Of a stretch of DNA of 64,000 bases, positions 57,162 through 64,000 are shown in pieces (the stretch's first letter is position 1; every line of letters begins with the position of its first letter). This stretch comes from Auanema rhodensis (Eukaryota; Animalia; Nematoda). The stretch covers positions 15,686,001 to 15,750,000 of the forward strand of contig OZ059898.1 of assembly GCA_964057225.1 (NCBI GenBank), read 5' to 3'. The position numbers and the translations under genes were made by a program. The notes under the pieces were generated by a model. That model made no database searches. It was not told the origin of the DNA and saw only the letters and a program-made list of their open reading frames with translations.

Positions 57162-57600
57162 TTTTATCTTCATGACCTGTACAGTCGCTTTCTTGTTTAT
57201 TTTTTTTCGTGCTATTCTGTAACGATTGTGTTATCTTGTGCGCGTAAAACACACTTTTAACTACAACGTCGTCGTATTCTTATCAGCTTGGAGTATTTTT
57301 CGTTGTGCTTCTATTCACTTTTTGTATTCAGTAATCACTTTTGTTTCTTGTTATATACTTCGCATTAATTTATTTTTGCTTTATACCACATTTAATGGTA
57401 AACCAGTCTGACCTTCATAATCTCACCTCATAAACTCGAGTGTAGTCTCGTTCTTGTTTTCATTGATTAAAATACTTCATTCCATTCTCATCTGTCTTGT
57501 TCGGGTTGGAGGCCTCTATATTTTATTTATTACGCGCATTTTTCTTTATAGTTTGCAGTCACTATTCTTCCTTTCTCTATATAAGTTTTCTTCAGTAAGA

Positions 57601-58132
57601 ATGAGCTTAACCCTTAGCAGAACCGAGGTTGCTTCCCATAACAACAGCAAATCTTGTTGGATCGTTATTGGAAATAAAGTTTACGATGTTTCCAAATTCC
57701 TAGATGAAGTAATTGATTTATAAACTTGAAATTTACTCAGCATTTGTTTCTAGCATCCAGGAGGATGTGAAGTTCTTCTCGAACAAGCTGGCAAAGACGC
57801 CACGGAGGCTTTTGAAGACATTGGTCATTCCTCAGATGCTCGTAGTATGAAAGATGATTACTTCGTCGGTGATTTAGTAAAGGTACACTAAATTTTTGTT
57901 CATTAATAAATCTTAAATTCTTTTTCTTGCATAGGAGGATCATCAATTGTACAGCTACGATAAAAGACACCGCAGCTCATCTTCCGGAGATAATAAACAA
58001 AGGTAATTTTAGAAAATTATTCTAAATTCATTTGTTTTATATTCCAGAAATCAAGCAAGTCCCTTGGATGGAATGATCATGCCCCTCTTTGTCGCTGTTA
58101 TTGTAGGACTTCTTTATTATCTTCTTGCCTAA
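57601..58132 (+). CDS. cytb-5.1: Cytochrome b5, tail-anchored
   Basis: [46 protein letters not shown] and a C-terminal transmembrane helix. Confidence 0.95.
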
Positions 58133-58321: not shown

Positions 58322-61300
58322 ATGGAGCTCTCTGAAGATAATAAGGAAAATGTGAAAGGAACTGAAATCAGTCCCATATCTGAAAAAAGTTAGAGTTTAT
58401 ATTATATATTTCATTGAAATGTCTTTTAGATATCATTAAGTCAAATGTTGTTTGGCATTATGAACGATCAAAGGGTGACTGGGTTTATTACACTGAAGAT
58501 ATCATTGAAAAATTAAATAAGTTTGTATCGAAAAACATATTTGCTAATAATTAGTGGTTCTAGTGCTAAAGAAGATGATGTAGTTTCTGTTAATGTAGAG
58601 GAAGCAGATTTAGACATAGATATGAAAACTATGAAGCAAATTAATATGATATCTTCGTTCCGTAGAAGTGTTCGATGTTGCGTTCAAACTGATAACGATG
58701 GTTCGCACATTGTTCCAGATATTTCTAAACGATTCCATTTAGAATGCATTCTTTGGGAAGCTATGAGGGGCAGAATGTATGTTCCTTTACCACGATCTCT
58801 TCAAGTTGAATTCGAGAAGCAAAAGGTTCGCTTCATTTGAAATAGTGGATATGTTTGTTCTAATTTATAGTCTGATGGACAGGAAACTTTCAAAATTAAT
58901 TACGCTGATGACGAGTGGGAAGTGAACCTGTTAGACATGGAGATGAAGAACCAGAAGGGAACTAGAAAGGTGATCGACAACTTTAGGGATATCTGTAGTT
59001 TGTTTTTTTCAGAAGTTGAGACGCCAAGAATGTACAGCAGAAAGTGCGATTTCCGCAGTCCCAACTGTTACTGCAGTTCGGACGAGAGGCTTAACAAAGC
59101 GGTCTCTGAAAAGTGTAGAATATAAAACTGAAGTCAAAGAAGAGATTGTAAGTTTTACTTTTGAAAAAAGATATTCGAAAATGATTTAGGATGATGATGA
59201 ATATGAGGAAGCACCTGCTAAAAAAGGAAAGAAAAGTGCTGGAGATGTCAAGCCTTCGAAGAGCTCGAAGAAAAGTAGGACTGTCTTCACTCCTTCCTCA
59301 ATTTGTTAAATTCATCGTTCAGGCATTAAGAGCAATTCTGACTTTTATAAAAGTACTAAGAGAGTTGTGCTTGTAAAGGGTAGAGCTCCAGTTGATCCTG
59401 AATGCACTGAGAAAGTTTCTGTTGCTCATGTTCTCGACGAAGGGAACACTGTGTGGGATGCTATGCTTAACCAAACTAACATTTCTCAAAATAACAATAA
59501 ATTCTACATACTACAACTTCTAGAAGATGATAAAGCGAAGAGTTATAGGTTTGTTGAGCTCATTTTTCAAAATTAGCTATTCATCATTTTCAGTGTCTGG
59601 TTCCGTTGGGGAAGAGTTGGATATCGAGGTCAAAGTAATCTGCAAAATTTTGGGGAATGCTTGGATGAAGCTAAAAAATGTTTCTGCAAAAAATTCCGCG
59701 ATAAGACATACAATGATTGGTCTGAAAGGCATGAATTTGAGAGGGTTCCTGGAAAATATACATTGATCGAAGTAACTAAACTATTGTTGCTTCTTAACAT
59801 ATCATTGTTCTAGATGGACTATAAGCTTAATGACAAAAAGGAAGAAAATGATTCAGAGGTCAAGAAAGAAGAAGATGATGGAGAAGACGATACTGGGAGC
59901 TATGTAAGTTTCCTATTCAAGTTAGAGGGGATGCTTACATCGAATTTCATAAATATTTTGTTTTGTTAGTTCTGCGCTAGTTATTTTTTCAAACACCTTT
60001 TTTGTTAATTGTGTTTCATTTAGGAGGAGTCAAAACTTGATGAAAGAGTTCGAAGTTTCATGGCTTTATTATGTAATCGTCAAACTATGGAAGAAGCAGC
60101 TATGGAAATGGAGTATGACTCTGCTAAAGCTCCTTTAGGCAAGGCCCTTATCTAAAGTTATAGTAATAATTTTATTATAGGAAAGCTAACTGAAACTCAA
60201 ATCGAGGAAGGTTATCGTCTACTTGCTGATATTGAAAAGTTCATAGCGGATAAGAAATTCGGCCGCGAATTCCTAGATGCTGTGAATGAATATTATACGA
60301 AAATTCCTCATAATTTCGGGTTTGATTATCAGTTTCTTCAGTTAGTACTGTACAGTTTATAGTTTCCGTCAACCTCCACTGATAAAAACCAATGATATGT
60401 TGAAAAAGGAAAATGAATTGCTTGAATTCTTGCAAGAAATTGAAATTGCTATTCGTATTCTTGGAAGTGGAAAGAAGAAGGGAGACAGGTTCGTTTTAAC
60501 CACACTCACTGAATTATCTTCCGTGCTTGTAGGCGTGATCCTGTGGACCGTTATTATGATAATATGAACTGTGACATCACTGCAGTTGAAGAAGGAGACG
60601 AAGAATACAAGGTATGGTTTCTCATTATAATTATCTTTGTGCAAATTGTGTATTTCAGATGGTTGAAAAGTACTTGAAAACAAATCATGCCTCTACTCAT
60701 ATGTATTCTATGAATATCGTTAATATCTTCAAAGTCAAAAAAGATGAAGAAGAAGAGAAGTTTAAAACTGATATTGGCAACAGGTATTGGTACATTTCTA
60801 CTGTATAATATTTAATTCTATTAGAATGCTCCTTTGGCACGGGTCTCGTCTTACTAACTTTTATGGTATTTTATCCAAAGGACTTCGTATTGCTCCACCT
60901 GAAGCTCCTACTTGCGGTATCACTTGATTTAATAATATATTTAATAAAACTTATATTCTTAGGTTATATGTTCGGAAAAGGTATTTACTTTGCTGATATG
61001 GCCAGTAAGTCTGGAAACTATTGTTATCCAGCTTCTGGAAAGCCGGGAGTTTTGCTTTTATCTGAGGTTCAATTTCATTTTTATAAAATGTTTTGACATA
61101 ATTTTTAGGTTGCTCTCGGAAACCCTAGAACTCTTCGGGACGCCGATTACCAAGCTAATAAGCTTCCCAAAGGCACCCATAGTACCTTTGGTGAAGGTCG
61201 CACCATTCCCAAAAAGGAACAACATGCTACTTTGTAAATCACTATAAAGATATCAAAGAATTAATTTTTTTTCAGGGATGATGGACTTGTTGTTCCTTGC

Positions 61301-61420
61301 GGTAAACCAGTTAAACGTGAAGATGATGGAAATTATTCTTTGCTCTACAACGAATACGTTGTATACGATACTGCTCAGGTTAAAATGAAATATGTCGTTG
61401 AAGTTGAGTTTGATATGTAA
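58322..61420 (+). CDS. parp-2: PARP2-type poly(ADP-ribose) polymerase (WWE-WWE-WGR-regulatory-catalytic)
   Basis: [84 protein letters not shown]; the H-Y-E triad is intact. Confidence 0.93.
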
Positions 61421-62185
61421 TGATGTTTTACTTGTGAATGCTCTAACTCAGTTTGATCAGATACTCATAGTTGTTCTCATTTAATTCCTTAATCTCGATA
61501 AACAACGTGTAATTTTCTTTTTTATCGTAATAAAGTTTCAATTGTTCAACATCTTAGTAGGAGACAGCCCGCTGTGCTCATAAGTTGATATTGTGTTCGT
61601 TTATTGTCAAAAAAAACAAAGCAGTTATATGATTATGAACTATACTGTTTACGCCTGATTAGAAGGTTGGTATAATTGGATTTTCTATAATCTTTCACAA
61701 TTCGGGCCGTGATGGTCATCATGGTAGTGCGCCGCAATATTACTAATAACCTTTTAAGGAATCCTCAATCCTTTTTGTCGAATACATCACTTGTGTTGAT
61801 CAAACAGTTTAATTTATATTTAATCAGAGAAGACGAATATTTCGCACTTGTGGTTCTTAAGAAGTGATCTCTCTTTTTCTATATAATAATCTATTTCGTC
61901 GTACACTGCAACAGTTGGCTCTTGCTTCTCTCATACTTGCTTGAACCATTGTATTCCGTGAAGCTTTATCCTACGTTCTTTATTGATTTCTCATCATTTT
62001 TGTTATATTTTCATAGCCATTGTTTTGATTATATCACTCAGTTTGAACTTTAAAAGAACTTCATTTCAGCTTAGTTCTTTCTCTTTTGGCGTTGTGATGG
62101 TTGTGCTCGCTTTTTGTTAAAGTTGTTTTTGTGATTGTGGCCAGCCTGTTTGTCTCTGTGATACTTCTCAGTTCCATTATACAGA

Positions 62186-64000
62186 ATGGACTCGTTATAT
62201 TTGAATACTCCTAAACCTTTTACCAAATATCCCACTGGCTATAGGCCAGTAAACTCAAGTTTAGCTGGTGCTCGTCGTTTCGGCAGTGTATCGTCGTTGA
62301 GCAATAATTACAATTTTAATGATTGCTCACCAAATCAGCAGCATCATCACTCAACGTCCTATCATCAACAGTATAGTCCCAATAACCCGAATTCTTTTGC
62401 GGAAGTGACTTCTCAGAGCAGCAAAAGCTATCGCTATGGTAGTGTTGGACCCTATGGTGAAATGCCTCAGGATAATAGCGCTCTTTCATCTAGAGCTGCT
62501 TCGCCACAGAGATACATCTTCCCACAAACACCAAATCTACTCGAAAGCTCAGTAATTCACAGTGAAGTTCCACGAACAATGACAGGTGAAGAATTTCTTG
62601 AAAAACTTCGTCGACAAAAAGAAGAAATCGAGCGTACGCTATCCAAGCCTTTGGTCTCCAGTTACATTCAATCACCTCCTCCCTATGGATCCGAAGAGTG
62701 TTCCCCTATGATGAAGGCCAACTTTCATGTTCATGATAACATGCCAAATCACGATTCTCGCTTCTACACTAACTCAGCTCCAACACCGTTGTTCAAAACT
62801 CGATCAGAATCAGTAATAGATTATGACAGAAAATCTTATCCACATATTTCTCCAATGAATGATCAAAAGATGTGTTCTTCATTTAATGGCCAATTTCATA
62901 ATTCTGATCAATTCTCTCCTCCACAACATTTTAATCGTTTGAGTATGCCACCTCCTCCTACTCGTTCGATTGATGATCAAAATCTTCACTGTGAATCTAA
63001 CTGGATGACCCATCCCCCTCCACCTATCAATATGGATCCAAAGCCACATCGGAAGGATTTCAACGGAAACTATGGAGATTCACTTTCATTTAATTTAAAT
63101 GAATCGTTCAAAAATGGACAAACAATTGTTCCTATTAAGCTGGATGATGATAGAATTTTGAAGATTTATGCTCCTCAAATACAACCACAGAATGATGCTG
63201 TTTCTTCTCCTCTAAATATCAAGACTGGTCAACACACACCTGTTTCTAATCCATTGCTTCCGGCATCTGTTCCAAGAGAAGTTAAACCATTTGAGTCAAA
63301 TAGTTATCCTACTTCACCTTACGATTTACGATTTGAACCGTCATCTGATAATGGACCTACATGGAACAGTCCGGTTTCTGCTCCAAATTCTTTTATCCAA
63401 CCTCCACCTCCAAAATACCACCAGCACAACCCTCGGGCAGATTCTACAACCAGCCGATCTATGAGAGTTGGTAGTGTTCAAGATGTTAGCCGAGATAGTT
63501 ATATAGCGAAGGATTATGACAGCAACAATTTCCCAGAAATACCATTAAGTGTGCGGGAAAATAACATACCTGTCGTTTCGCAGCGAACCCGACCTTCACC
63601 ATTTAATTCGCGCCTGGATGAACCTAGCAGAAGAGATTCTTTCTTTGGTCCCGTATCTTCAAAAGTATTTCCAGGTCACAGCCGAATTAACGGCTTCATA
63701 AATGATTCTACACAAGCTTCAGCAGGAACATTCCAACAGGTGGAGCAAACACGAACATCAGCACCCAAGGAGAGATCCTTTGCTATTGTTTCCCGACCAA
63801 GCTCTCCTCCTGTTTCTGTGGAAAGCACAACACGAACGATTCCTAACCATACATTGCGCCAAAGAGATTTTTCCCCTTCCCGAATGAACGAACGACCTTT
63901 TACCTTATCTTCACCGACACAAGAGCCCAGCTCCCCACGATCTATCAGCTTCAGCCCGACGAACTCAATTACAACAAGAAGCTTGGGTTCTCCTATGTCA
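62186..64000 (+). CDS. Partial gene: single long Pro/Ser-rich exon of 605 codons, open at the window end
   Basis: ACAG|AATG start, then MDSLYLNTPKPFTKYPTGYRP... with no stop through 64000. It is absent from the ORF track because it lacks a stop. Confidence 0.85.
   Translation, partial: MDSLYLNTPKPFTKYPTGYRPVNSSLAGARRFGSVSSLSNNYNFNDCSPNQQHHHSTSYHQQYSPNNPNSFAEVTSQSSKSYRYGSVGPYGEMPQDNSALSSRAASPQRYIFPQTPNLLESSVIHSEVPRTMTGEEFLEKLRRQKEEIERTLSKPLVSSYIQSPPPYGSEECSPMMKANFHVHDNMPNHDSRFYTNSAPTPLFKTRSESVIDYDRKSYPHISPMNDQKMCSSFNGQFHNSDQFSPPQHFNRLSMPPPPTRSIDDQNLHCESNWMTHPPPPINMDPKPHRKDFNGNYGDSLSFNLNESFKNGQTIVPIKLDDDRILKIYAPQIQPQNDAVSSPLNIKTGQHTPVSNPLLPASVPREVKPFESNSYPTSPYDLRFEPSSDNGPTWNSPVSAPNSFIQPPPPKYHQHNPRADSTTSRSMRVGSVQDVSRDSYIAKDYDSNNFPEIPLSVRENNIPVVSQRTRPSPFNSRLDEPSRRDSFFGPVSSKVFPGHSRINGFINDSTQASAGTFQQVEQTRTSAPKERSFAIVSRPSSPPVSVESTTRTIPNHTLRQRDFSPSRMNERPFTLSSPTQEPSSPRSISFSPTNSITTRSLGSPMS

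Follow-up and report, generated by a model that had tools for sequence, protein, structure and literature searches.

Predicted tandem WWE domains, the second degenerate, in a PARP2-type gene of the nematode Auanema rhodensis

The WGR domain of PARP2-type enzymes senses 5′-phosphorylated breaks, the helical domain autoinhibits the enzyme, and the H-Y-E catalytic domain supports polymer synthesis. In human PARP2, this WGR-regulatory-catalytic body is preceded by a short basic N-terminus without a WWE domain. The WWE-less N-terminus of mammalian PARP2 binds poly(ADP-ribose) (PAR), by which the enzyme is activated, and recruitment of the mammalian enzyme is largely PARP1- and PAR-dependent. Many non-mammalian metazoan PARP2 homologues bear WWE domains (Perina et al. 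2014, DNA Repair 23:4; PMC4245714), whereas the domains of Caenorhabditis elegans PME2 are WGR, PRD and PARP only (Citarelli et al. 2010). Here, a PARP2-type gene with two predicted WWE domains is described from the nematode Auanema rhodensis. The gene lies in a 64,000-nucleotide stretch of contig OZ059898.1 (positions 15,686,001–15,750,000 of the forward strand, assembly GCA_964057225.1), which is referred to as the window and whose numbering is used for all features of the gene. An original prediction, made from the letters of the window, had described tandem WWE domains fused to a WGR-type PARP and implied that the fusion was novel.

The PARP2-type gene (58322–61420, + strand, as are its parts and the two neighboring reading frames described below) was modeled by reading the three frames together with the splice signals. 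It consists of 18 exons with 2283 nt of coding sequence and encodes 760 residues followed by a stop codon. The reading frame and phase are preserved at all 17 joints, which use 16 GT donors and one GC donor. The window was searched exon by exon, and a protein of Auanema sp. JU1783 (CAI4225979.1, 738 residues; hereafter P0001) was used as the full-length proxy. P0001 is the closest full-length relative found and contains two WWE domains followed by WGR, PARP_reg and PARP domains. All of the window exons map onto P0001 in order and abut one another (exon 2 on residues 23–47, exon 3 on 50–119, exon 4 on 120–152, exon 5 on 153–197, and so on to exon 18 on 692–738), and this colinearity supports the exon model as well as an unbroken coding sequence from the WWE exons into the PARP body. 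The short acidic N-terminus encoded by exon 1 (58322–58388, with the ATG at 58322) has an NKENV motif in common with the P0001 N-terminus. P0001 differs from the window protein in its length (738 versus ∼760 residues), in the absence of a linker insert, and in the tyrosine residues at positions 107 and 144 of its second WWE copy, where the window protein has alanine and tryptophan, respectively.

The locus is identified with high confidence as a nematode PARP2 orthologue with a tandem WWE N-terminus. In the PARP body, the WGR, PARP_reg and PARP domains each exceed their Pfam cut-offs exon by exon and occur in that order. The WGR domain (59454–59738) is encoded by exons 7 and 8, which are separated by an intron at 59549–59593 (29.4 and 54.3 bits; profile positions 1–29 and 32–78 of 79). 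The regulatory (helical) domain (60024–60488) spans exons 10–12 (36.5, 37.1 and 29.3 bits; positions 1–36, 38–85 and 88–125 of 135). It encloses the sole GC-AG intron of the gene (60139–60180; GCAAGG...TATAG), and only this joint restores the conserved PLGKL motif. The catalytic domain (60659–61420) is distributed over exons 14–18, which together cover positions 6–199 of the 199-position Pfam PARP profile and end with the stop codon at 61418–61420. The H-Y-E catalytic triad is present, as judged by alignment to the human PARP1 and PARP2 motifs. The histidine in LLWHGSR (60838–60840) and the tyrosine in GKGIYFAD (60986–60988) align with both human chains, and the glutamate in LLYNEY (61352–61354) aligns with the same motif of human PARP1. 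Exon-by-exon Pfam searches gave no zinc finger, PADR1 or BRCT match in any exon. Residues 220–738 of P0001 score 509 bits against human PARP2, compared with 388 bits against PARP1 and 166 bits against PARP3, and the informatively named members among the best 120 relatives of P0001 are annotated as PARP2 (poly [ADP-ribose] polymerase 2).

The N-terminal exons of the window gene are predicted to encode two WWE domains, WWE1 and WWE2, of which the second is degenerate. WWE1 is divided between exon 2 (58430–58520), which contains the N-terminal half (W-x-Y-E ... G-x-W-x-x-Y), and the first part of exon 3 (58564–58678), which contains the C-terminal half (M-x-Q-x-N ... R-x-V-R). WWE2, the copy nearest the WGR domain, is likewise divided between the end of exon 3 (58745–58825), where its degenerate N-terminal half aligns with the WWE2 of orthologues, and exon 4 (58871–58969). 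Exon 3 matches the Pfam WWE profile (PF02825; curated cut-off 21.1 bits) with an E value of 0.0027 and 18.5 bits. The match is confined to profile positions 31–66 of 67, as expected of an exon with the C-terminal half of a domain whose first half lies in exon 2; a six-frame genome search finds the same stretch. Exons 2 and 4, each of which holds a half-domain, gave no WWE match when searched singly against Pfam. A phmmer search of exon 3 against the PDB sequences also gave no match, a result of little weight for an exon composed of two half-domains.

A profile was also built from the N-termini of 17 orthologues, without the window rows. When run on the 2115 open segments of at least 20 residues in six frames of the window, the orthologue profile picks only the segments that contain exons 2, 3, 4 and 5, and it does so in profile order. 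The E values are 1.3e-7 for exon 2 (profile positions 27–59), 2e-14 for exon 3 (55–127), 1.1e-3 for exon 4 (129–162) and 1.1e-6 for exon 5 (161–201). Identities to P0001 amount to 16 of 25 residues for exon 2, 16 of 33 for exon 4 and 31 of 45 for exon 5. Exons 5 and 6 (59013–59274, joined at 59147/59190 and followed by the joint 59274/59323) encode a conserved basic linker with the motif RR..E..AESA.S..P....RTR..KR and, after it, a stretch rich in Lys and Ser. The linker motif is also found in the Plectus, Ascaris and filarial orthologues. In the orthologues, WWE copies that were cut apart pass the Pfam cut-off singly (35.6 and 29.3 bits in Auanema P0001, 43.3 and 59.6 bits in Plectus, and 30.7 and 37.4 bits in Ascaris).

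An AlphaFold (AF2) model of P0001 residues 1–200 contains two beta-sheet-plus-helix units, with predicted local distance difference test (pLDDT) values above 94 across residues 21–160. In a Foldseek search, the model retrieved the tandem WWE domains of DTX1 and Drosophila Deltex (8r6a and 2a90) at the top, followed by WWE1-WWE2 of ZAP/PARP13 (7sz3). Single WWE domains of TRIP12, RNF146 (3v3l) and HUWE1 were matched at template modeling (TM) scores of 0.7–0.83 and deviations of 1.1–2.2 Å. These best structural matches are also sequence relatives. Unlike the WWE domains of P0001, which belong to a polymer-forming PARP, they reside on E3 ligases or on mono-ADP-ribosyltransferase or inactive PARPs. 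Superposition on the DTX1/Deltex and ZAP tandems is loose (TM ∼0.4), so that the two copies may be packed differently.

The two WWE peptides on which the original prediction relied are both encoded at 58430–59030 by exons 2, 3 and 4 and the start of exon 5, with GT-AG joints and compatible phases. Its reading of two WWE domains with a degenerate second copy is borne out by the half-domain Pfam match, the ordered profile matches, and the Pfam scores and predicted fold of the orthologue. The order that it proposed, with the WWE domains ahead of a basic linker and the WGR, regulatory and H-Y-E domains, agrees with the exon-by-exon Pfam matches and the alignment of the triad to human PARP1 and PARP2.

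Some observations weigh against a WWE-PARP2 fusion at this locus. No single window exon reaches the Pfam WWE cut-off (18.5 versus 21.1 bits at best). The predicted fold is that of P0001, to which the window exons are 48–64% identical in this region, and splice phases and orthologues are what connects the WWE exons with the PARP body. The subthreshold Pfam score, together with the lack of any Pfam match for exons 2 and 4 alone, could be taken to mean that a low-complexity N-terminus resembles WWE domains by chance. Such a coincidence is, however, extremely improbable and was rejected, given that the orthologue profile finds four exons in order with E values between 1e-3 and 2e-14, the next best window segment having 0.39, that the two P0001 copies pass Pfam separately, and that the P0001 model has a tandem WWE fold.

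The N-terminal WWE exons could alternatively constitute a separate small gene or transcript, with the PARP starting downstream. Databases do list WWE-only proteins of relatives, with 282 residues in Heterorhabditis, 218 in Plectus and 176 in an unnamed sequence, and the informative matches in an exhaustive search with exon 3 were P0001, Heterorhabditis bacteriophora, Plectus sambesii and one unnamed fragment. Beyond their WWE domains, however, these short entries also contain the basic linker of PARP2, and that of Heterorhabditis extends as far as a match to exon 7, directly ahead of the WGR domain. In the window gene, exons 4-5-6-7 are joined in compatible phases without a stop, and dozens of nematodes and other animals have full-length colinear proteins. 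Certain WWE-PARP2 relatives are, moreover, encoded on assembled-run contigs of 2.4–4.3 kb, which are too short for introns, so the fusion is seen in transcript-sized sequence too. A separate WWE-only gene is thus very unlikely, and it was rejected on the basis of the phases, the full-length relatives and the colinearity with P0001. The entries named 'WWE domain-containing protein' from H. bacteriophora (A0A1I7XG89, P0002) and P. sambesii (A0A914VUE2, P0003) look like truncated or split PARP2 models because they end in the PARP2 basic linker or in exon-7-like sequence.

The best overall explanation, which very probably applies, is a PARP2 orthologue that retains the ancestral WWE N-terminus. 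Of the 120 best full-length relatives of P0001, nearly all combine PF02825 (WWE) with PF05406 (WGR), PF02877 and PF00644. They include nematodes (Ascaris, Toxocara, Brugia, Loa, Wuchereria, Dirofilaria, Enterobius, Syphacia and Panagrolaimus), a brachiopod, molluscs, a nemertean, rotifers, sponges, a cnidarian, a hemichordate and echinoderms, as well as vertebrates (many fish, amphibians, a lungfish and a snake). PARP2 contains one WWE copy in zebrafish, two in Xenopus and three in the sponge Dysidea. The non-mammalian metazoan PARP2 proteins, such as those of Ascaris suum (F1KXC7), Brugia/Loa, Xenopus tropicalis and Danio rerio (parp2), share the order WWE(1–3)-basic linker-WGR-PARP_reg-H-Y-E with the window gene and align over their full length to the Auanema orthologue with 40–47% identity. 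Among animals, PARP2 most commonly has the WWE, WGR, PARP_reg and PARP combination, which is also its ancestral architecture. The WWE part was lost in mammals, C. elegans PME-2, Pristionchus and Steinernema, and mammals and C. elegans are the derived cases. In the Steinernema and Pristionchus relatives, the WGR domain starts near residue 72, too close to the N-terminus for a WWE domain to precede it. C. elegans PME-2/PARP-2, whose orthology to the window gene is assumed, is likewise a nematode PARP with WGR, regulatory and catalytic domains and differs in having no WWE domain.

The statements of the original prediction that mammalian PARP2 and C. elegans PARP-2 lack WWE domains agree with Perina et al. 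2014 (PMC4245714) and Citarelli et al. 2010, respectively. Its suspicion that similar fusions exist in other invertebrates proved correct, as sponges, a cnidarian, molluscs, rotifers, echinoderms and many nematodes have them. The novelty that it implied does not hold. The fusion of WWE domains to PARP2 has been in print since 2014, is the standard animal PARP2 architecture among the best 120 relatives, and is found in hundreds of database entries, many nematodes included. As a discovery, the window gene matters little, since its ancestral architecture had already been described.

In RNF146, the residues Y144, Q153 and R163 reportedly have ligand-contact roles. Seven signature or ligand-contact positions were tabulated for both WWE copies of 118 relatives (98 non-nematode and 20 nematode sequences, the latter including P0006, an unnamed sequence assigned by similarity). 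RNF146 numbering was taken from the 3v3l alignment and from PMC11269756. Tyr107, Arg110, Trp114 and Lys175 of RNF146 were taken from that paper, in which Tyr107, replaced by tryptophan in HUWE1 and TRIP12, is tied to the iso-ADP-ribose preference of RNF146 (PMC11269756). In the non-nematode sequences, the WWE2 signature is kept almost without exception (W105 in 91, W107 in 88, W113 in 87, Y116 in 89, Y144 in 93, Q153 in 90 and R163 in 92, with 93–95 sequences aligned per position). WWE1 is present in about half of the 98 non-nematode sequences, where Q153 and R163 are kept and tyrosine never occurs at position 144.

The nematode sequences differ from this pattern in both copies. Plectus is the only one of the 20 that keeps the WWE2 signature. 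The others have isoleucine, methionine or leucine at position 153, mostly tyrosine at 163, valine, phenylalanine or leucine at 116, and phenylalanine at 144, so that Q153 is lost in 19 of the 20 sequences and the equivalents of R/K163 and Y116 are lost in most. The window WWE2 has W105, E106, A107, Y113 and L116 in the exon 3 half and W144, M153 and K163 in the exon 4 half. The tabulated residues suggest decay of the canonical ligand-binding copy in most nematodes. In WWE1, by comparison, nearly all 20 nematode sequences retain W105, Y/F107, W113, Y/F116, Q153 and R/K163, with tyrosine at position 107 versus tryptophan in other animals. The window WWE1 (W105, Y107, E108, W113, Y116, L144, Q153 and R163) matches the nematode consensus.

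A reader-writer function, in which the enzyme would both recognize and build ADP-ribose polymer, is plausible for the window protein, as inferred from its domain content. The idea of the original prediction that the polymerase could be recruited by its own product is a reasonable one, and for mammalian PARP2 such recruitment has already been demonstrated, through an N-terminus that lacks WWE domains. In the proposed mechanism, the WGR domain would bind DNA breaks, the regulatory domain would autoinhibit the enzyme and the H-Y-E domain would build the polymer, while the WWE module would help to recruit the enzyme to, or retain it at, sites where PAR is already present. The initial PAR would most likely be made by the PARP1 orthologue. 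Such WWE-based recruitment would parallel, by analogy, the PAR-dependent recruitment and activation of mammalian PARP2. In animals with an intact WWE2, the WWE module probably does the PAR reading; in the window worm, either WWE1 would do the reading or the reading would be weakened. If ligand binding survives, the likelier reader is WWE1, because W105, Y107, W113, Y116, Q153 and R163 are kept. WWE2 would then probably act as a structural partner, by analogy with one copy in the Deltex and ZAP tandems. Binding of PAR or ADP-ribose by the window protein is a tentative proposal that we put at somewhat below an even prospect.

Several observations speak against this function. Most of the contact residues are lost from the window WWE2, leucine occupies the Tyr144 position in the window WWE1, and several nematodes manage without the WWE module altogether. 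The WWE tandem may be a relic that no longer reads ADP-ribose and that serves as a structural or protein-binding module or is heading to loss as in C. elegans, Pristionchus and Steinernema, a possibility that deserves serious consideration without being the expected outcome. It would fit the widespread loss of Q153, R/K163 and Y116 from nematode WWE2, to which the window copy adds the loss of an aromatic residue at position 107, and the absence of Tyr144 from the WWE1 of every PARP2 examined. PARP2 proteins without WWE domains exist, furthermore, in three nematode lineages, and PAR binding is reportedly absent from some WWE domains, that of PARP14 among them. The retention of the WWE1 contact positions in nearly all 20 nematode sequences and the well-ordered fold predicted for the tandem of the closest relative, P0001, nevertheless argue for continued selection, and in the Deltex and ZAP tandems only one WWE copy binds the ligand. 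In a more specific scenario, the PARP2 reader of Rhabditida would have been rewired, with the WWE2 contacts lost and Trp107 of WWE1 replaced by an RNF146-like tyrosine that favors iso-ADP-ribose, and the reading would have moved to WWE1 or be decaying toward a C. elegans-like loss. We regard this scenario as unlikely, though worth stating.

Between the two WWE copies, and touching neither, lies a 42-nt stretch (58701–58742; GTTCGC...CCATTTAG) that is absent from 17 of 17 aligned orthologues. It may be a 14-residue linker insert peculiar to the lineage, by which the window gene would differ from other non-mammalian metazoan PARP2 genes, or an unrecognized intron, in which case the protein would have 746 residues. 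The stretch is in frame and free of stops, its length equals that of the modal intron of the gene, and its removal yields an inter-WWE linker as long as that of P0001. Its GC content (0.36) is exon-like. In-frame GT..AG stretches of 40–50 nt are frequent by chance inside the exons of this gene (20 were counted), and the splice signals alone therefore prove nothing for an intron here. The introns of the model (58389–61275) are strikingly uniform, 16 of the 17 measuring 41–48 nt and one 120 nt, with a GC content of 0.15–0.41 compared with 0.38 in the exons. An AATAAA motif at 61529–61534, ∼110 nt past the stop codon, is a plausible polyadenylation signal.

Just upstream of the PARP2-type gene, a cytochrome b5-like gene (57454–58132) matches Pfam Cyt-b5 in two of its exons (38 and 41 bits). 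These are followed by a hydrophobic tail at the C-terminus, and the stop codon is at 58130–58132. The gene is separated from the PARP2 ATG by 189 nt, a spacing typical of nematode operons. Downstream, a long Ser-, Pro- and Asn-rich open frame (62186–64000) runs past the end of the window and has no Pfam match. A search of the genome (181 Mb in 112 contigs, in which the window corresponds to C6:15686001–15750000) found two further PARP catalytic loci, on contigs C7 and C4, as well as two additional loci with WWE matches. The coordinates of these PARP and WWE loci are C7:13066814–13067573, C4:13762442–13762845, C3:18913949–18914122 and C6:11739298–11739538. They probably represent a PARP1 orthologue, a tankyrase- or PME-5-like gene and WWE-bearing E3 ligases.

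The decay of WWE2 in nematodes should temper the transfer of a "PAR reader" annotation to genes of this kind. If the reader of Rhabditida has indeed been rewired, the window gene would be a natural intermediate for asking what the WWE domains do in PARP2. The worms that keep the module, namely the one represented by the window genome, Auanema, Heterorhabditis, ascarids and filariae, are a place to test the role of WWE domains on a polymer-forming PARP.

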